DNA of 64,000 nucleotides, from sequence record MZ574431.2. The stretch is one strand, 5' to 3'. Shown here piece by piece: positions 844 to 50,959 of this stretch. Numbering within the stretch: position 1 is the first letter of the stretch; each line of letters starts with the position of its first letter. A program made the translations under genes and the position numbers. The notes below the pieces were generated by a model. That model had not been told where the DNA came from. It was given only the letters and a program-made list of their open reading frames with translations, and ran no database searches.

Positions 844-1830
844 ATGACCTTTCGCTACCTGACGACCTGCTCGGGCGTCGAGGCGGTGACGCTCGGCTGG
901 GCGCCTCTTGGCGCCCGCGCCGTCGCCTATTCCGACTACGACCCCGACAACGACTTCCCGACGCGCTTCCTCAAGGAACGCTTCCCCGAAATCCCCAATC
1001 TCGGCGACATGCTGAAGATCGACGGCCGCCTCTGGCGCGGCCGGGTCGACGTGCTCTGGGGCTCCACGCCCTGCCAGAGCTTCAGCCTCGGCGGGCTGCG
1101 TAAGGGCATCAAGGACCCGCGCGGCGCCCTGACCCCGGCCCTGGTGGGCCTCGCCAACGAAATCGCCCCCAAGGTTCTCTGCTGGGAGAACGTCGACGGG
1201 GTCCTTACCGACAAGGAAAACGCTTTTGGATGCTTTCTCGCAGCGCTGGCCGGAAGCGATACTGTCCTCGTCGCTCCAGGGAACAAATGGCCAAGTGCAG
1301 GTTACGTTGTTGGACCCGAACGCCGCATCGCGTGGCGAGTGCTCGATGCCAAACATTTCTTCCTCGCCCAGCAGCGCCGGCGAGTGTTCCTTGTCGCGTG
1401 TCCTGTTGACGGACCCGATCCCCGAGAAGTTCTATTTGAAGGCTTCGCGCCTTTCGACGCTCTTGGAGAACGCCGCGAAAGCTGGGCGCCAGTTGTCGAG
1501 CGCCGCGATGTCAGCACTGACGCTTACGCCTGCGCGATCCGAGGCCGCAAGCACGGACAGCAGTTCGAGCAAGGCGGACTGATCGCCAACTGCCTCCGCG
1601 CCAGCCAGGGCGGCTCCGACAAGCCCCAGGTCCTGGCCAAGGAGGCCGACGACCAATGGCGTGTGCGCAACATGACCCCGGTCGAGGCCGAGCGGTGCAT
1701 GGGCATGCCCGACGATTGGACCCTGATCCCCGGCGCCTCTGACAGCGATCGCTACCACGCGATCGGCAACAGCCTCGCCGTTCCTTGCGTCCGCTACATC
1801 GGCGAACGCCTCCTCAAAGTGCTCGGGTAA
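844..1830 (+). CDS. DNA (cytosine-5)-methyltransferase
   Basis: Motif IV GSTPCQSFS, motif VI WENV, QxRRRVF and C-terminal motif X IGNS; motif I variant TCSGVE. ORF track start 793 overlaps the -35 box, so 844 is preferred. Confidence 0.9.
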   Translation: MTFRYLTTCSGVEAVTLGWAPLGARAVAYSDYDPDNDFPTRFLKERFPEIPNLGDMLKIDGRLWRGRVDVLWGSTPCQSFSLGGLRKGIKDPRGALTPALVGLANEIAPKVLCWENVDGVLTDKENAFGCFLAALAGSDTVLVAPGNKWPSAGYVVGPERRIAWRVLDAKHFFLAQQRRRVFLVACPVDGPDPREVLFEGFAPFDALGERRESWAPVVERRDVSTDAYACAIRGRKHGQQFEQGGLIANCLRASQGGSDKPQVLAKEADDQWRVRNMTPVEAERCMGMPDDWTLIPGASDSDRYHAIGNSLAVPCVRYIGERLLKVLG

Positions 1831-1926
1831 GGCGCGTCCCGCCAACCCGGCCTCCCGGCGCTGACGAAGCGCCCACAACACGCCTACCCGCGACGGAAAT
1901 GCGCGGCCCTGGGCCTGGAGACCTCC

Positions 1927-4203
1927 ATGAAACTGCGTCGTCGCCGCCTTGTGTGGGACATCGAAACCGATGGCCTGCTGCACGAACTGACCCGCGTCCA
2001 CGTCCTGTCGATCCGCGACCTGGACACCCGCCAAACCTACGTCTTCCGCCACAACGCCGAGATGGACAACATCCGCGAGGGCCTGAAGATGCTGAACGAG
2101 GCCGATCTTCTGGTCGGCCACAACATCATCGGCTTCGACAACTACGCCCTCTGGAAGGTCTACGGCGACGAGTTCAACCCGCAAGGGACGATGCGCGACA
2201 CCCTGATCATGTCGCGCATGCTCTACTCGCAGATCAAGGACGACGACTTCCGTCTCTGGAAGCGCGGCGTCCTGCCCGGCGAAATGATCGGCAGCCACAC
2301 CCTGGGCGCCTGGGGCGCCCGCCTGGGCTTCCCCAAGGACGACTACTCGGCGCGGCGCAAGCAGCAGGCGACCGAGAATTGGCAGACCGTCTGGGGCCTG
2401 CCCGACAAATGGAACAACAACCTCAAGGCCTACATCTCCTGGTACACCTGGGCCGAATGGAACCAGGAGATGGAAGACTACGGCGTCCAGGACCTGGACC
2501 CGACCGAAGCCTTGTGGCTGAAGATCGAGCGCGTCCAATGGTCTGAGGACGCCACGATCCTGGAGCACATGATCTGCGACCTGATGGCGCGGGTCGAGCA
2601 GAACGGGATCAACTTCGACCGCGAACAGGCCCTCGTGATGGAGGCCGAGCTTCGCGCCGAATATGACGTCAAGACCGCCGAGGCCATCAAGCACTTTGGC
2701 AAGTGGCACACCGCCGCCAAATGGCGCAAGGGCGAGCCGCCGCGCGCCGAGTTTGGCGAGGACGAGAGCCGCACCAACTGGGCCGAGGTCACCGTGCCCA
2801 AGCGGTCGATCAAGTTCAAAGACCCAATGACCAAGGGCGGCGACAAGACCGAAGGCTGCCCCTACTGCCCGATCGTCCTCAAGGAGTTCAACCCCAACTC
2901 CCGTCCCATGATCGTCAACCGCCTGGAGACGATCTACGAGTGGGTGCCCGAGCGCTTCACCGAGAAGAACACGCCGATCGTCGACGACGAAGTGCTGCGC
3001 AACCTGGGTCTGACGATCCCGATCTGCGTCGAACTGGCTGAAATCTTCTACTACAAGAAGCGCCTTGGGCAACTGGCCGACGGCGCCGAATCCTGGCTGC
3101 ACAACTGTGACGCCGAGGGCCGCATCCATGCCCGGATCAATCCGGGCGGCACGGTCACCAATCGCGCCAGCCATTCCAAGCCCAACATCGCCCAGGTCCC
3201 CCGCGTCGTCTACAAGAAGCTCAAGCAGTGGGTGGAAAAGGACGTCACCTACCGCTGGATCGGCGGCAAGATCGCCTACGGCGTCGTCAAGATCGACAAG
3301 CGCACCGGCGAGGAGTTCTTCGACCAGAACCTGACACCTCTGCTTGACCCCAACGGCGAGCAGTTCATCGGCACGCCGGTGATCGACAAGGAGACGGGTG
3401 AGTACGTCCTTGACCGCGACGGCACGATCAAGACCAAGCCGACCCTGCTGAAGGGCCGCGCCGGCGATCACGGCTGGGACAGCCGCAATCTCTTTATGGT
3501 GCCCAAGGGCTGGGCCTTGATGGGCGCCGACCAGAAGGGCATCGAACTGCGCGCCCTGGCGCACTTCATGTGGGAGTTCGACGAGGGCGAATACGCCCAA
3601 ATCCTGCTCGAAGCCGACATCCACGACGCCCACACCGCCGCCATGGGCCTGGACAGCCGGGACAAGGCCAAGACGTTCATCTATGCCATGATCTACGGCG
3701 CCCAGGACTTTAAGCTGGGCGTCACGATCGACCCGACCCTGGAGAATTATCCCCAGAAGGCCAAGGCCCTAGGCGCGCAGATGCGTGAGCGTCTGATGTC
3801 CAGGTATCCCGCCTTGCGGAAGCTGATCAAGTCCGTGCAGCGGACGGCCAAGAAGGGCTACGTCGAAGCCCTGGACGGCCGGCAACTGTTCGTCCGGGCC
3901 AAGCACAGCGCGCTCAACACCCTGCTGCAAGGCGCCGGCGCGACCCTGGCCAAAATCTGGTGCGTCTCGTTCGAGTCGTTCATGGAAGAGGCCGGCTTCA
4001 AGCATGGCTGGGATGGCGACTTCGTCATCCTGGCGTGGATTCACGACGAACTCCAGGTCGCCGTCCGCGACGACCCGGCCGTCAAGATCGCCGCTGAGCG
4101 CTACATCACCGAGGCGGCCACCTACTCGGGTGAGCGGGTCAATTTCCGCCTGCCGGTCGAGATCGACGTCAAGTGGGGCACGCGCTGGAGCCACACCCAC
4201 TAG
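1927..4203 (+). CDS. polA: Family A (T7-like) DNA polymerase with 3'-5' exonuclease domain
   Basis: ExoI WDIETDG, ExoII GHNIIGFD, motif A ADQKGIELR, motif B RDKAKTFIYAMIYG, motif C WIHDELQ. Confidence 0.95.
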   Translation: MKLRRRRLVWDIETDGLLHELTRVHVLSIRDLDTRQTYVFRHNAEMDNIREGLKMLNEADLLVGHNIIGFDNYALWKVYGDEFNPQGTMRDTLIMSRMLYSQIKDDDFRLWKRGVLPGEMIGSHTLGAWGARLGFPKDDYSARRKQQATENWQTVWGLPDKWNNNLKAYISWYTWAEWNQEMEDYGVQDLDPTEALWLKIERVQWSEDATILEHMICDLMARVEQNGINFDREQALVMEAELRAEYDVKTAEAIKHFGKWHTAAKWRKGEPPRAEFGEDESRTNWAEVTVPKRSIKFKDPMTKGGDKTEGCPYCPIVLKEFNPNSRPMIVNRLETIYEWVPERFTEKNTPIVDDEVLRNLGLTIPICVELAEIFYYKKRLGQLADGAESWLHNCDAEGRIHARINPGGTVTNRASHSKPNIAQVPRVVYKKLKQWVEKDVTYRWIGGKIAYGVVKIDKRTGEEFFDQNLTPLLDPNGEQFIGTPVIDKETGEYVLDRDGTIKTKPTLLKGRAGDHGWDSRNLFMVPKGWALMGADQKGIELRALAHFMWEFDEGEYAQILLEADIHDAHTAAMGLDSRDKAKTFIYAMIYGAQDFKLGVTIDPTLENYPQKAKALGAQMRERLMSRYPALRKLIKSVQRTAKKGYVEALDGRQLFVRAKHSALNTLLQGAGATLAKIWCVSFESFMEEAGFKHGWDGDFVILAWIHDELQVAVRDDPAVKIAAERYITEAATYSGERVNFRLPVEIDVKWGTRWSHTH

Positions 4204-14222: not shown

Positions 14223-14420
14223 TTCGTCTAAGGCCTTGAAGATACTAAGACTTGTGTCTTCAAGGCCATCTACCCCTCAGTTTTGTGGTGCTCCGGGATA
14301 TGTCAAGCTGCGCGTCACGTGACGTGATTCTTGACTTCTGTCCCGTTTTGAGGCACCTTGCCAACCCTTTCGACTGAACCCAGCCCCCGCTCCGAGGGGC
14401 TTTTGTTTGCGGACCCCTAC

Positions 14421-18986: not shown

Positions 18987-19117
18987 TGATTGTCAATCGA
19001 ACTGCGAAGCTAGGGTCTAATTGCCGCAGAGCTTCAATTTTCGCTTGCGCCTTCGTCATGACGTGATACATGGCTTAAGTCATATATCGTGTCATCATAA
19101 CGAAGGTGAAAAATCTC

Positions 19118-19828
19118 ATGGCTCTAGCCTCCGCTGTCAAGGCCCCGACGACGTCGGCCGGCTCCCGTGCATCCGCCCAAAAGGCGCGTGGCAAGACCTC
19201 CCGCACGACCAACGTGTGGATGAGGAACGGCGACGAAAGCTCGGTCCACGGTCGGCTGACGTCGCGCCGCGTCCAACTGGGCCTGGACCAGATCGACATT
19301 GCCAATCGCATGGGCGTGGCCCGCGCGGCCTATTCCCAGTACGAGACCGGCAAGGTCGTCCCCTCGCTCGAAAAGATCGAGAAGGCTGCCGAAGCGCTTG
19401 AGACCACGCCCCAGTGGATCGCGTTCGGCGGCAGCAATCACGAAATCAAGATCATGTCCTACGTGACCGGCTCGCGCACGTGGGTCGACACCGGCGAGAC
19501 GTGGCCGATCCCGGCATCTTGGCTGAAGTCCAAGTTCCCCAACCTCAACCCCCACAGTCTGGACGCGTTCGAGGCCACCACCGACAGCCCGAGCGCCATG
19601 GTCCAGAAGGGCGACATCCTGATCGTCGCCCGCGACCAGAAGCCCAACAACAAGCTGTACCAGGAATTCGTCTTCTCGATGAACGGCGAATGTCACACCG
19701 ACAACGTCCGCAAGGTCGAAGGCGGCTTCCTGATCGGCTCGGGCGACGAAGGCAATCCGCCCGTCCAGGTCAGCCACCACGCGATCCGCATCCTGGGTCA
19801 GGTGGTCACGATCGTCGCCGCTGCGTAA
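19118..19828 (+). CDS. XRE-family HTH regulator with an S24-like C-terminal domain
   Basis: HTH LDQIDIANRMGVARAAYSQYETG; C-terminal DSP...KGDILIV. Confidence 0.8.
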   Translation: MALASAVKAPTTSAGSRASAQKARGKTSRTTNVWMRNGDESSVHGRLTSRRVQLGLDQIDIANRMGVARAAYSQYETGKVVPSLEKIEKAAEALETTPQWIAFGGSNHEIKIMSYVTGSRTWVDTGETWPIPASWLKSKFPNLNPHSLDAFEATTDSPSAMVQKGDILIVARDQKPNNKLYQEFVFSMNGECHTDNVRKVEGGFLIGSGDEGNPPVQVSHHAIRILGQVVTIVAAA

Positions 19829-19858
19829 AGCTCGTCACGACGACACGAAATATGACAT

Positions 19859-19891
19859 GGCCCGCCGGAGCGATCCGGCGGGCCTCTTTTT
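19859..19891 (+). terminator. Rho-independent terminator of the replication operon
   Basis: GGCCCGCCGGA-GCGA-TCCGGCGGGCC followed by TCTTTTT. Confidence 0.85.
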
Positions 19892-19962
19892 GTTCTGGTT
19901 TGAAAACGATTGCCAATGTCCACCCTGAGTGGACAAAACGGCCAGCAGCTAAACCGCGCATG

Positions 19963-19992
19963 AAAAGGCCCGCCAGATCGCTCCGGCGGGCC
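19963..19992 (-). terminator. Minus-strand Rho-independent terminator (near-copy of 19859-19891, inverted)
   Basis: Minus strand reads GGCCCGCCGGAGCGATCTGGCGGGCC-TTTT. Confidence 0.75.
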
Positions 19993-20275
19993 TCTGGGGT
20001 AGGGGAAAGCCGAAAGCTCGGCTGCCCAGGGTAAGGACTGGCCCGAAGGCGCCTTGGGTCCGGTGATCCGGGGTAACGGGTCCTCCCCGCGCCCTCACCG
20101 GCCCCAAAGCAGAGGCTGTGCAGCCTGCTCTGTCCTGGCTCCGACTCGCTCTTGCTTGGCCATCCAGCCTTGCTTCACCGCACGCCGCGTGAACCCATCA
20201 CCGATAGGTGGCGCCCGCCCTCCCTTCCAGTCGGCTCGGGGCGGGACGAAGACGCGTCACAGCGCCTCCGATGTC
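19963..20275 (-). ncRNA. Candidate structured ncRNA of unknown family
   Basis: Own promoter (-35 at 20302-20307, -10 at 20280-20285), own terminator, multiple helices including a C(UUCG)G loop, no credible ORF. Confidence 0.5.
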
Positions 20276-20279
20276 CCCC

Positions 20280-20319
20280 ACCATAGCGACCCCGACGTAG
20301 GTGTCAAGAAATGCGTCAT
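20280..20319 (-). promoter_or_regulatory. GTGACG-N6-TTGACA-family promoter on the minus strand
   Basis: ATGACG-CATTTC-TTGACA-N16-TATGGT. Confidence 0.65.
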
Positions 20320-20529
20320 GAAGAAAGAGGGCTTGACGCCCACCTTCAGCGTGGCATCCTGCCTGGGCATCGACAACCCAGGCCTCCTCTTCCGTTGGGA
20401 CTGGACCGGATTGCGGGTGTGGAGGCGTCCTGTGGCGCTGGACTTCCGGGGGACCCTCCACACTGACACCATTTAGAATTCACGTCGCGGCGACATAATG
20501 CTTGACACGGCTCACGAGGTAGGTTACAG

Positions 20530-20925
20530 GTCAGGAGTTGTCGGCTGAAGGGTCCTTCGGGACCTGGATGACGGGCTACATAGACACTGTACTGGACCGG
20601 GGTGCGATTCCCCGCGCCTCCACCACCAAGTCCCCCGGCTGGAGCCCACAAGGCTCCACCGATCCTGCCCAGCGAGGGATCGGCATCTGAACGGTTCGGG
20701 GGACTTTGTACTGGGGGCGATCAGCATCGACAGGCAGAAGAAGTGGAAGACGCGACACGGCATGGCTGCCGGTTCCCATCAGGGTTCGCTCGGCCAACAT
20801 TGATAAATGTCAATGCTTCGAACGACAACGACGTCGTGGTTTCGACCATGACCTCGGTCAAGCTGGCCGCTTAACGGCTCGGGGTTCAGAAGGCGCCTTT
20901 TCACCCAATGGCCTTCAGCTTGCCC
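20530..20925 (+). ncRNA. ssrA: Circularly permuted two-piece tmRNA
   Basis: T-arm and acceptor CGCCTCC-A-CCA end at 20625; 5' GGGGGCG at 20713 gives G3:U70; tag frame ends ...SVKLAA-stop (20872-20874); GCTGAAGG 20544-20551 pairs with CCTTCAGC 20912-20919; TTGACA at 20502. Outer ends approximate. Confidence 0.9.
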
Positions 20926-20929
20926 TCAG

Positions 20930-21140
20930 GGGCTCAGAGGACAGGCGGCGCAAGCCGCGCGATCAACACCAGGGGGCGGCCTGGGTCCCGAAACCGCCCA
21001 CTCCTCCTGCTTTCGCAGGCGGGATCACCACCGGCCCTCAGGCTGGTTCTGTCGGCAAACGATCAACCTGCCGGTGCTCTGATCCCGTCTACGAAAGCTG
21101 GAGGTTCGGCGCCGCCCTCGGGAGGCATCGAGCTTTCATC
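20930..21140 (+). ncRNA. Candidate structured RNA domain between tmRNA and tRNA-Met
   Basis: GCGGC-GCAA-GCCGC; 21019-21027/21080-21088; 21029-21035/21070-21076; 21093-21099/21131-21137. Confidence 0.45.
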
Positions 21141-21143
21141 TGG

Positions 21144-21220
21144 TGCGGGGTGGAGCAGTCCGGTAGCTCGCTTGGCTCATAACCAAGAGGTCAAGGGTTC
21201 AAATCCCTTCCCCGCTCCCA
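21144..21220 (+). tRNA. tRNA-Met (CAT), initiator-like
   Basis: Cloverleaf; anticodon arm CTTGG-CTCATAA-CCAAG; unpaired 1:72 (U:U); encoded CCA. Confidence 0.92.
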
Positions 21221-21249
21221 AATCTTCGCCTATATAGGCAAGTAGACAA

Positions 21250-21563
21250 GGCCGCTGAACCGGCATCCTCGGATGTCGATGAAAGGTCTAACCTCGCGTC
21301 GTTCCCTGGTCAGTAGGGGAGCGGCAGTCGGAGCAGATAAGGCGGGCGCGCAGCGGCCGAGATAAGGGCTTCGATTAGTCGGTCGGCGGGCTAGAGGGAT
21401 GAGAGGCCAGATGTCTCCTGCCGGAGGGACGCTGGCCGAACCTTACGATCTGCTTTCCAGGCCTCACGTTCGGCCCCAGTCAATGGGGTCAGGGGTTGAG
21501 GCTAGACCCCGGCGAGACGCCTGTAGCAGGCTCACAAGCTAGGACGTGCGGCCTGGAAAGCAG
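21250..21563 (+). ncRNA. Candidate structured RNA domain between two tRNAs
   Basis: 21250-21257/21351-21358; 21405-21410/21432-21437; perfect 14-bp 21450-21463/21550-21563 enclosing three small hairpins. Confidence 0.5.
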
Positions 21564-21568
21564 GCCGG

Positions 21569-21643: not shown

Positions 21644-21799
21644 AACCATAGCAGCGCCGTACCGGTCACTGGGCATTGCGACCCACACCCACGGCTCAAG
21701 GGACCGGCGCCGGGACCTTGAAGGGGTTGGCCATACCCGGCACAAGGCCAAAAGGAACCCAGCCCCAGGTACGCCTCGGGTTGGGTTTTCCTTTTTGTA

Positions 21800-26549: not shown

Positions 26550-26655
26550 CTAGGCGTTAACCATGTTCCATGTCAAGAATTGCGTCACGGGGTCGTAGCA
26601 GGCGGCGCATGACAGAATCCTTGACATGTCAAGGCTTTTTTGCCATGTTTCTGAG

Positions 26656-49927: not shown

Positions 49928-50959
49928 TTAGGCCGAAGCCAGCAGGCCGTCAGCCTGTTTCTTGTTCTCGATCAGCGAGGTGATGAACGCCGCGCCGATG
50001 ATGATCGCGCCCAGTAGGCCCGTGATCCACTCGGGGACCTCGAACACCGGCGAGATCAGCATCAGGCTGCCCAGGGCGATGATCGCCCAGAAGGCGCCGT
50101 GCTCCAGGTGCGGATAGGCTTGCAGCGTACCGCGATCGACGGCCAGCAGGGTCAGTTCCCGCACCGCGAAGGCGCCGACGAACAGACCCACGGTGATCCA
50201 GACGATGTTGTTGGTCAGGGCGAAGGCGCCGATCACGCCGTCGAAGCTGAACGAGGCGTCCAGGACTTCGAGGTAGATGAAGCCGCCGATGCCCGCCTTG
50301 ATCACCTTGTCGGCGACGTCGCCGCCACCGGTCGCCAGGGTGCCCACGGCTTTGGTGGCCAGATAGGTCACCAGACCCAAGGCGCCGGCGAAGATGTAGC
50401 CGTAGCGTTCTTCGACCGGCAGCAGGCCCGCCAGCGCCAGGACCGCGACCAGCACGATCATGATCTCAGCCGAGTCCAGGATGCCGATCTTCGACAGGAA
50501 GCGTTCGATCGGGCCGAGCCAGTGGTGGTCCTTCTCCTTGTCCAGGAAGTGGGTCAGGCCCACCTTGAGCAGGAACACGCCGCCGAAGGCCGCCACCATG
50601 TAGTGGACGCCGGTCAGGGTCGCGGCGTACTTGGCCGGGTCGCTCAGGGCCATCACGGTGGCGTCGACGGGCGACATGTGCGCGGCGACCGACACGATGG
50701 CGATCGGGAACAGCAGACGCATGCCGAAGACGGCGATCAGGATGCCCCAGGTCAGGAAGATTTTGCGCCACTTGTCGTCCCAGTTCTCCAGGACGTGGGC
50801 GTTGACCACGGCATTGTCGAAGCTCAGCGACACTTCGAGGATGGCCAGGACGGCGACGGTGATCGCCATCGCCGGGCCGGCGATGAAGAAGGCGGCGATG
50901 ATGGCCAGGAAGAAGGCCAGGATCGGCAGTCGGAAGTAGTGGAATACGGGCTTGTGCAA
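49928..50959 (-). CDS. TerC-like (DUF475) integral membrane protein
   Basis: LEVSLSFDNAVVNA, VFGMR, YLEVLDASFSFDGVIGAFA, LEHGA. Confidence 0.85.
   Translation of the reverse strand: MHKPVFHYFRLPILAFFLAIIAAFFIAGPAMAITVAVLAILEVSLSFDNAVVNAHVLENWDDKWRKIFLTWGILIAVFGMRLLFPIAIVSVAAHMSPVDATVMALSDPAKYAATLTGVHYMVAAFGGVFLLKVGLTHFLDKEKDHHWLGPIERFLSKIGILDSAEIMIVLVAVLALAGLLPVEERYGYIFAGALGLVTYLATKAVGTLATGGGDVADKVIKAGIGGFIYLEVLDASFSFDGVIGAFALTNNIVWITVGLFVGAFAVRELTLLAVDRGTLQAYPHLEHGAFWAIIALGSLMLISPVFEVPEWITGLLGAIIIGAAFITSLIENKKQADGLLASA

Follow-up and report, generated by a model that had tools for sequence, protein, structure and literature searches.

Here we describe RNA-1, a previously unannotated non-coding RNA (ncRNA) that is likely to be the product of a real and independently transcribed gene of Bertelyvirus phages, on the minus strand at 19962–20273 of the window, by which we mean the whole 64,000-nucleotide (nt) stretch of record MZ574431.2 that was analysed. 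The window comes from the Caulobacter jumbo phage RB23, genus Bertelyvirus. An earlier note on this DNA had proposed that a stand-alone ncRNA gene on the minus strand, running divergently from the gene for transfer-messenger RNA (tmRNA), has a promoter and a terminator of its own, and this proposal is supported by conservation and by compensatory changes in the related phages CcrBL9 and CcrSC. Judged by the marks of an independent small RNA (sRNA) gene, the locus has a promoter of its own that is conserved among relatives, an intrinsic terminator on the same strand and no conserved reading frame, and its RNA carries compensatory base changes beyond those in controls, as expected of a structured RNA selected for its fold, in a comparison of three sequences only. 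The gene is lineage-restricted and previously undescribed; it is laid out like a bacterial sRNA gene and belongs to no described family. The explanation that we favour as a whole, in which this gene yields a stable, protein-binding RNA and the hairpins upstream of it form a separate element, we regard as slightly better than an even call.

Material compared

The comparison set consists of three independent sequences (RB23, CcrBL9 and CcrSC), two of them close relatives. The stretch 19800–20560 is identical (100%) in RB23 and six near-identical isolates (C1, C2, J4, BL47 and two further Bertelyvirus records), and from 20134 onward CcrBL9 and CcrSC are roughly 76% identical to the window. These two are sister lineages, 91–97% alike in the region apart from the promoter spacer and start. 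All of these are jumbo phages of about 300 kb, genus Bertelyvirus, with Caulobacter vibrioides CB15 as host.

RB23-like phages also occur in wastewater, and two wastewater ‘RNA-seq’ studies (runs X1–X3) hold fragments 98–100% identical to RB23. Four clean short contigs (19018–19157, 19914–20082, 20205–20432 and 21007–21195) all lie in non-coding stretches, and the tmRNA is not covered by contigs of RB23-like phage in these runs.

Promoter, terminator and predicted extent of RNA-1

The features of the predicted transcript, whose limits follow from its promoter and terminator, are as follows.

20280–20319, minus strand: promoter P1 (TGACG element 20319–20314, −35 box TTGACA 20307–20302, 16-nt spacer, −10 box TATGGT 20285–20280)
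19962–20273, minus strand: predicted ncRNA RNA-1, about 312 nt in RB23
20134–20273, minus strand: conserved 5′ domain, with hairpins H1 (20247–20270), H2 (20214–20245) and H3 (20194–20208) and a GGAU-loop hairpin (20154–20173)
19993–20133, minus strand: variable 3′ domain, made up of the four elements on the next lines
20109–20131, minus strand: RB23-only hairpin (AGCAG...CTGCT)
about 20055–20106, minus strand: variable-length arm (base helix 20060–20066/20095–20101)
20041–20050, minus strand: UUCG hairpin (GCC-UUCG-GGC)
20008–20023, minus strand: 6-base-pair (bp) tetraloop hairpin
19963–19992, minus strand: intrinsic terminator t1 (GC-rich hairpin of 10–14 bp at 19967–19992, then UUUU)

The promoter had been read as ATGACG-N6-TTGACA-N16-TATGGT on the minus strand at 20319–20280, which is what the DNA holds at that place. 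The pattern TTGACA-N15-18-TANNNT occurs twice in the 64-kb window against 0.18 occurrences expected. When all TTGAC(A/G) sites of the window were listed to define promoter families, the arrangement TGACG-N6-TTGACA recurred at 788, 4241 and 29271 on the plus strand and at 26576 on the minus strand, with looser copies at 14306 (minus) and 26621 (plus), and the label ‘family promoter’ that P1 had been given is therefore apt. Promoters of this arrangement precede methyltransferase, exonuclease, helicase and other genes of the replication module. CcrBL9 and CcrSC retain the −35 box, the sequence flanking it upstream and the −10 region GCTA(T/A)G(G/C)T, with a spacer that varies; identity in the spacer and start region is only 55–66%, even between CcrBL9 and CcrSC. 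The wastewater contig 20205–20432 shows the same pattern in a natural variant, as all three of its differences fall inside 20275–20298, the promoter spacer and start region. By its sequence, P1 reads as a host promoter of the sigma-70/sigma-73 type.

The same listing contains a second, very regular promoter family that is distinct from that of P1, with the pattern ATTCTGCAAGAAA-N4-TTGACA-N17-TA(G/A) and ten sites: 28346 and 34378 on the plus strand and 40566, 47607, 54297, 56930, 57924, 59076, 60395 and 62438 on the minus strand.

At the other end, a minus-strand intrinsic terminator had been placed at 19992–19963, and we confirm a hairpin at 19967–19992 followed by UUUU. In RB23, this hairpin reaches −28 kcal/mol on the minus strand compared to −21 kcal/mol on the plus strand, where an A-C mismatch replaces what is a G-U pair on the minus strand. 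Both relatives keep t1, oriented for the minus strand. A simple terminator scan missed t1, a likely effect of a stem that is able to continue into the U run. RB23 has the 27-nt terminator hairpin twice, inverted and 26/27 identical, at 19859–19885 (repressor gene) and at 19966–19992 (ncRNA), and CcrBL9 and CcrSC have one copy only, the one with the U run on the minus strand.

With the start set about 7 nt downstream of the −10 box and the end in the U run past the terminator, the predicted RNAs measure roughly 312 nt in RB23, 234 nt in CcrBL9 and 294 nt in CcrSC. The length of about 310 nt given earlier is thus right for RB23 but not for its relatives, and the conserved core comes to about 140 nt. 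This 5′ domain, counted from the predicted start, is 81–82% identical between RB23 and CcrBL9 or CcrSC, which is comparable to dUTPase (78%) and to the tmRNA (87%); the beta subunit of ribonucleotide reductase (RNR) reaches 87%. It includes a long, highly conserved and weakly paired stretch (20134–20190), and the GGAU-loop hairpin within it has a 2 × 2 internal loop, which reads AA/AA in RB23 but GA/AG in the two relatives.

The 3′ half is only 30–51% identical and differs among the phages by whole hairpins, while its hairpin architecture is kept. A small GC hairpin, the 6-bp tetraloop hairpin, a CCUAC...AG linker and the terminator are common to all three. The long arm is present in RB23 and CcrSC and shrunk to a 5-bp stem in CcrBL9; given the sister relationship of CcrBL9 and CcrSC, it is probably an ancestral feature that CcrBL9 has lost.

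Evidence for a selected fold on the minus strand

The 39 pairs in the consensus fold of the 5′ domain make up 7 helices; 98% of cells are paired, and in 5 pairs both sides have changed. Column shuffles give 1.6 such pairs on average, with 2 of 500 shuffles reaching the observed count, and sliding the partners by 1–3 columns as a control leaves 0–1. Two compensatory exchanges fall in H1, and two more, C-G to U-A, in the helix 20214–20220/20239–20245, one of two helices picked out in the earlier note. The other, 20060–20066/20095–20101, holds up as the base of the variable arm and reads CCGG/CCGG in RB23 but CAGG/CCUG in the relatives. The 6-bp hairpin of the 3′ domain is AGCCGA/UCGGCU, GUCGUC/GAUGAC and GUCGCC/GGCGAC in the three sequences, with tetraloops GCUU, UACG and UGCG, respectively.

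All other features that had been listed are likewise present in RB23, but two of them are not kept in the relatives: the hairpin AGCAG-GCTG-CA-CAGC-CT-CTGCT exists at 20109–20131 and is specific to RB23, and TTCAC...GTGAA pairs in RB23 while its pairing is broken in CcrBL9 and CcrSC.

Several features point to the minus strand as the one that folds. The GCC-UUCG-GGC tetraloop at 20041–20050 reads correctly on the minus strand, as had been claimed, and C(UUCG)G, together with C(UACG)G in CcrBL9 and C(UGCG)G in CcrSC, forms UNCG tetraloops on that strand only. The helices of the 5′ domain contain nine G-U cells and no A-C cells when read on the minus strand, and the terminator, H3 and a 3′ hairpin of CcrBL9 each have one pair that is G-U on the minus and A-C on the plus strand. 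The wastewater contig 19914–20082 has four differences, two of them in stems: 19985 G>A, within t1, and 20023 T>C. Each of these turns its pair into G-U as read on the minus strand and into A-C on the plus strand. Minimum free energy favours the minus strand by 14 kcal/mol in RB23, 12 in CcrBL9 and 5 in CcrSC.

Known families and distribution

No Rfam 15 family reaches its gathering score in RB23, CcrBL9 or CcrSC, with sub-threshold matches only, up to an E value of 10. On the terminator hairpin these are BjrC68 (23 bits compared to 39) and CC2171 (23–26 bits compared to 75); on H2 it is CRISPR-DR15, and the idea of a CRISPR-repeat mimic was rejected at 21.7 bits against a gathering score of 36. 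ARAGORN and Rfam make no tRNA or tmRNA call on either strand within 19963–20532, and the Rfam models for 6S RNA, signal recognition particle (SRP) RNA and RNase P RNA have no match up to an E value of 10 in the three phages. The earlier failure to match the region to tRNA, SRP, 6S or RNase P RNA is thus borne out and extends to tmRNA and the other Rfam families.

Searching the core with blastn against 50,697 phage records returned 11 Bertelyvirus records and no others. Exact and gapped motif scans of IMG/VR found CcrBL9 and CcrSC and otherwise chance matches, one of which was a coding gene of enterobacterial P2-like prophages. Two metagenome scans gave no homologue, and a scan of 185,579 species genomes in GTDB gave 17 chance matches, none of which scored with the covariance model. 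That model (R1) also found nothing beside the tmRNA of CcrColossus, CcrPW and CcrRogue, at the syntenic loci. On present evidence, RNA-1 occurs in a single phage genus, Bertelyvirus.

The locus lies in a replication and nucleotide-metabolism module with the gene order RNR alpha, RNR beta, dUTPase, an XRE-HTH/S24-like repressor gene, a gap of about 1.3 kb without credible genes, the tmRNA and three tRNAs. Gene order is the same in CcrBL9 and CcrSC, where the gap carries no annotation; RB23 annotates one coding sequence (CDS) there, gp200.

Proposed mode of action

Host RNA polymerase would transcribe RNA-1 together with the replication-module genes that have the same promoter type. Replication genes of phage phiCbK are early (PMC10688885), and by analogy RNA-1 is probably expressed early or in the middle of infection. 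The working part would be the conserved 5′ domain of 140 nt, in which loops and internal loops stay invariant on stems that covary, and the 3′ half would be a tolerant set of stabilising hairpins with the terminator.

We tentatively propose that RNA-1 is stable and folded and acts by binding a protein, be it as a scaffold, a decoy or the subunit of a ribonucleoprotein, and rate this mechanism as possible and as more likely than a linear antisense seed. The role suggested in the earlier note, a decoy or scaffold for a host RNA-binding protein, is a sensible conjecture. Protein binding would account for long conserved unpaired stretches inside a fixed fold and for 3′ hairpins that come and go. 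Neither the tmRNA and its leader nor the tRNA spacers, nor any other part of the 64-kb window, showed conserved complementarity to RNA-1. Together with stems that covary while their loops stay invariant, and with the variable 3′ hairpins, this favours a shape recognised by a protein.

A number of points weigh against this explanation or parts of it. No protein partner, motif or target was found, and the case for protein binding is made by elimination. The covariation counts come from three sequences of which two are close, which makes them weak as statistics and suggestive, not decisive. The z-scores against shuffled sequence are modest (−2.1 to −2.7), and CcrSC scores better on the plus strand than on the minus strand. 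The U tract of t1 is four bases only, and the RNA of CcrBL9 lacks about 75 nt, so that part of RNA-1 is dispensable. Wastewater contigs cross both the predicted terminator (19914–20082) and the promoter (20205–20432); two of the three contig runs are rated as probably DNA, and the contigs, which are sparse, give neither strand nor end information.

The main rival is that RNA-1 is a trans-acting base-pairing sRNA, possibly Hfq-dependent, that alters the translation or stability of host or phage mRNAs, with a conserved unpaired stretch such as the 16-nt H2 loop CCGACUGRAAGGGAG as its seed. This we consider rather unlikely. An own promoter and an intrinsic terminator are the usual sRNA layout and conserved single-stranded stretches are present, but the RNA is long and almost fully folded, its U tail has four bases, and conserved complementarity is missing both within the window and within the 2 kb around the tmRNA. 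One match, 19 nt with one G-U between 20048–20066 and 50368–50386 in the mRNA of the membrane-protein gene gp245c, involves a non-conserved part of RNA-1 that is buried in a stem, at an E value of about 0.03; it is not kept in relatives and is probably due to chance. The gene gp245c lies on the minus strand and adjoins a TerD gene, and the matched site is in its coding region. Duplex folding for targets was uninformative in this GC-rich DNA, and in windowed duplex scans against the tmRNA–tRNA operon the top site differs in each phage. The H2 loop matches the tmRNA over 10 nt at 20875–20884, a match that was discarded as it is not kept in relatives, the tmRNA site being invariant while H2 covaries internally.

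One further match concerns the variable arm, of which 20084–20099 in RB23 and CcrSC is complementary at 14 of 16 positions to the 3′ end of the tmRNA (20609–20624, T stem and acceptor strand) and which has no such complementarity in CcrBL9. On the plus strand, this appears as a likeness of TCCCCGCGCCCTCACC to TCCCCGCGCCTCCACC (shuffle p of about 0.04 in RB23 and 0.1 in CcrSC), and at these local-alignment values a duplication of the tmRNA acceptor arm was rejected. As functional leads, the arm–tmRNA pairing and the gp245c match are both weak.

Upstream hairpins and a candidate tmRNA leader

The earlier note had counted further hairpins at 20310–20465 with the minus-strand RNA. They are real and conserved, but they are probably not part of that RNA, because they lie upstream of P1 and the one that covaries strongly fits the plus strand. 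The features that bear on this region and on the rest of the gap are the following.

20333–20360, plus strand: candidate promoter P2 (−35 box TTGACG 20333–20338, spacer of 16–17 nt, −10-like CATCCT 20355–20360)
20367–20532, plus strand: probable leader into the tmRNA, containing hairpin Hb
20417–20425/20455–20463, plus strand: stem of hairpin Hb, with further inner pairs and a conserved 10-nt loop, CGCUGGACUU, at 20436–20445
20502–20530, plus strand: promoter P3 (TTGACA-N17-TACAGG), directly before the tmRNA
20533–20965, plus strand: permuted (two-piece) tmRNA gene (ARAGORN/Rfam), context only
19118–19828, plus strand: XRE-HTH/S24-like (CI-like) repressor gene, neighbour of the ncRNA gene
20318–20476, plus strand: gp200 (52 amino acids, hypothetical protein), annotated CDS of RB23
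19949–20107, minus strand: open reading frame (ORF) of 52 amino acids, in a stretch absent from CcrBL9

P2 shows the conservation pattern of P1, with boxes kept and the spacer and start region variable: 6 variable nt follow CATCCT, after which a conserved block begins at 20367, and the predicted start is at about 20367–20369. A consensus promoter scan does not flag P2. P1 and P2 stand back to back with their −35 boxes 25 bp apart, and through this shared inter-promoter region RNA-1 might be co-regulated with the tmRNA–tRNA operon. Within the leader, Hb has five compensatory pairs and is 3–7 kcal/mol more stable on the plus strand in all three phages; its non-Watson–Crick pairs (three in RB23, one in CcrSC) are G-U on the plus and A-C on the minus strand. 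The first conserved block of the leader, UCGACAACCC (20370–20379), is complementary to GGAGUUGUCGG (20534–20544) in the first bases of the tmRNA; as neither sequence varies, covariation lends this pairing no support. A promoter like P3, GCTTGACA-N17-TACACA, also precedes the tmRNA in CcrColossus and CcrPW.

These observations suggest tandem promoters for the tmRNA–tRNA operon, the upstream one adding a structured plus-strand leader of about 165 nt, an arrangement that we find plausible at a little short of even weight. It would resemble the P1/P2-type tandem promoters of rrn operons in having two promoters about 170 bp apart before a stable-RNA operon (20333–20532), and rrn leaders in having a long helix and a pairing to the start of the mature RNA, with the difference that the tmRNA case is read from sequence alone and that its pairing is invariant. 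To our knowledge, tandem promoters with a processing leader have not been described for tmRNA genes. The hairpins at 20310–20465 are then probably a separate element, consisting of promoter DNA and the leader of a plus-strand tmRNA precursor. Other weak helices within 20310–20500 favour the minus strand; they are invariant or have one changed position each, and in the leader model they are partly promoter DNA. The remaining weight for 20310–20465 goes to a separate or longer minus-strand RNA or to roles at the DNA level.

Such a longer RNA would be a single transcript of about 550 nt, from about 20510 to 19962, that takes in the upstream hairpins and makes P1 internal or fortuitous. Several of the weak helices have G-U pairs on the minus strand, the ‘RNA-seq’ contig 20205–20432 spans P1, and a loop UCCAGC (minus sense, 20438–20443) could pair with the invariant GCUGGA at 20161–20166. 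We nevertheless judge it improbable: the listing of TTGAC(A/G) sites holds no upstream minus-strand promoter, Hb as the sole strongly covarying upstream helix favours the plus strand throughout, the P1 region evolves as a promoter and not as RNA, the contig across P1 is probably DNA, and the minus-favouring helices vary at one position each or not at all. An RNase P-like P4 pairing of GAAGUCCAGC with GCUGGAU was rejected, as Rfam does not back it and Hb fits the opposite strand.

DNA-level roles and coding potential

The conserved sequence might instead act as DNA, as binding sites of the CI-like repressor, an origin or another cis element. A palindrome, GACGCGTC, lies within H1, TGACG motifs flank P1 and mark the promoter family, and the XRE/S24-type repressor gene adjoins. 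Compensatory changes in at least five separate helices are not expected of DNA sites, and neither are the one-sided bias of G-U over A-C, the UNCG loops and an oriented terminator, which makes this role very improbable.

This high-GC sequence does contain ORFs, and gp200 is annotated in RB23. That the region encodes one or more small proteins, such as gp200 or the minus-strand ORF 19949–20107, is nevertheless scarcely credible, as neither frame is kept: gp200 stops after 23 codons in CcrBL9, lacks an ATG in CcrSC and contains 7-nt and 1-nt indels, and the stretch with the minus-strand ORF is the one missing from CcrBL9. Indels in the region measure 1, 7, 10 and 25 nt. Substitutions in the 5′ domain have no three-base periodicity (8/7/13), non-synonymous changes (13–19) exceed synonymous ones (3–10) in every one of the six frames, five of which contain stops, and amino-acid identities are low and alike across all frames. 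The gp200 of RB23 is very likely spurious and not a gene, which corrects the public annotation; it overlaps promoter DNA and a covarying RNA hairpin.

Comparison with known systems

RNAC and RNAD of phage T4, about 120–140 nt long and classed as late, are transcribed as part of the tRNA operon and released from its transcript by processing. Among known systems, they come nearest to RNA-1, which resembles them as a phage-encoded, non-coding RNA beside phage tRNA genes, but it lies on the opposite strand with a promoter and terminator of its own, spans 234–312 nt and has no sequence relation to them. It is neither embedded in nor processed from the tRNA operon, and an inter-tRNA element at 21221–21568 is a closer positional analogue than RNA-1. 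RNAC and RNAD have been described as ‘RNAs of yet unknown functions’ (PMC9697503).

The Caulobacter sRNA CC2171 (RF01867) shares with RNA-1 the gene layout of a sigma-70 promoter and an intrinsic terminator, and the terminator hairpin of RNA-1 weakly resembles positions 130–159 of its model; the match is limited to the terminator, and the body of RNA-1 is unrelated. Compared to typical base-pairing sRNAs, RNA-1 is larger and more folded. It resembles the protein-sequestering RNAs 6S and CsrB/RsmZ in being a stable RNA of many hairpins whose number varies between relatives and in having conserved loops, but it lacks the rod with a central bubble of 6S RNA, and any match to the 6S model of Rfam, and its loops have no repeated GGA-type motif as in CsrB/RsmZ. 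A CsrA-type sponge was rejected on this ground, the loops having no shared motif, and CsrA is not known to occur in Caulobacter.

Few structured RNAs of phages have evidence for a selected fold, and the role of hardly any of them is known. RNA-1 sits in a culturable phage–host pair with good genetics (Caulobacter vibrioides CB15), its core is compact at about 140 nt, and CcrBL9 is a natural deletion variant that marks the dispensable part. An unannotated RNA cluster around the tmRNA could show how jumbo phages that carry tmRNA and tRNA genes manage translation in the infected cell.

Further elements around the tmRNA

The spacer between two tRNA-Met genes at 21221–21568 (plus strand) is predicted to be highly structured, with a consensus energy of −167 kcal/mol and 110 pairs, of which 8 are compensatory. 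Its identity to CcrBL9 and CcrSC is 87–88%, compared to 73% for the adjacent tRNA-Met2, and it has neither an Rfam match nor an annotation. The spacer between tRNA-Met2 and tRNA-Cys at 21644–21799 (plus strand) is 90–92% identical among the three phages and ends, just before tRNA-Cys, in a strong plus-strand terminator, AACCCAGCCC...GGGCTGGGTT followed by TTCCTTTTT.

On a speculative and improbable view, the 2 kb at 19.96–21.9 kb would be a phage ‘RNA island’ in which three or more structured RNAs, none described before, surround the tmRNA; the minus-strand RNA, the plus-strand leader hairpin and the 340-nt inter-tRNA element would be members, and the 5′ domain of RNA-1 would be a subunit or decoy of an RNA–protein machine. 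If so, this machine would act on translation or ribosome rescue or would blunt RNA-directed defence of the host, and the arm of RB23 and CcrSC would physically tie RNA-1 to the tmRNA.

CcrColossus (locus 2514–3315) and CcrPW (locus 1645–3312) have a non-coding stretch of about 800 nt upstream of tRNA-Cys and the tmRNA. It holds 3–4 copies of a repeat of about 50 nt, CTGACGCGAACGCCGGCCGAGA...AGGCGTGACG, usually followed by GGGGCCAGAGGCC, with promoter-like TTGACA/TTGACC sites among the copies, and these repeats may be further small RNA modules.

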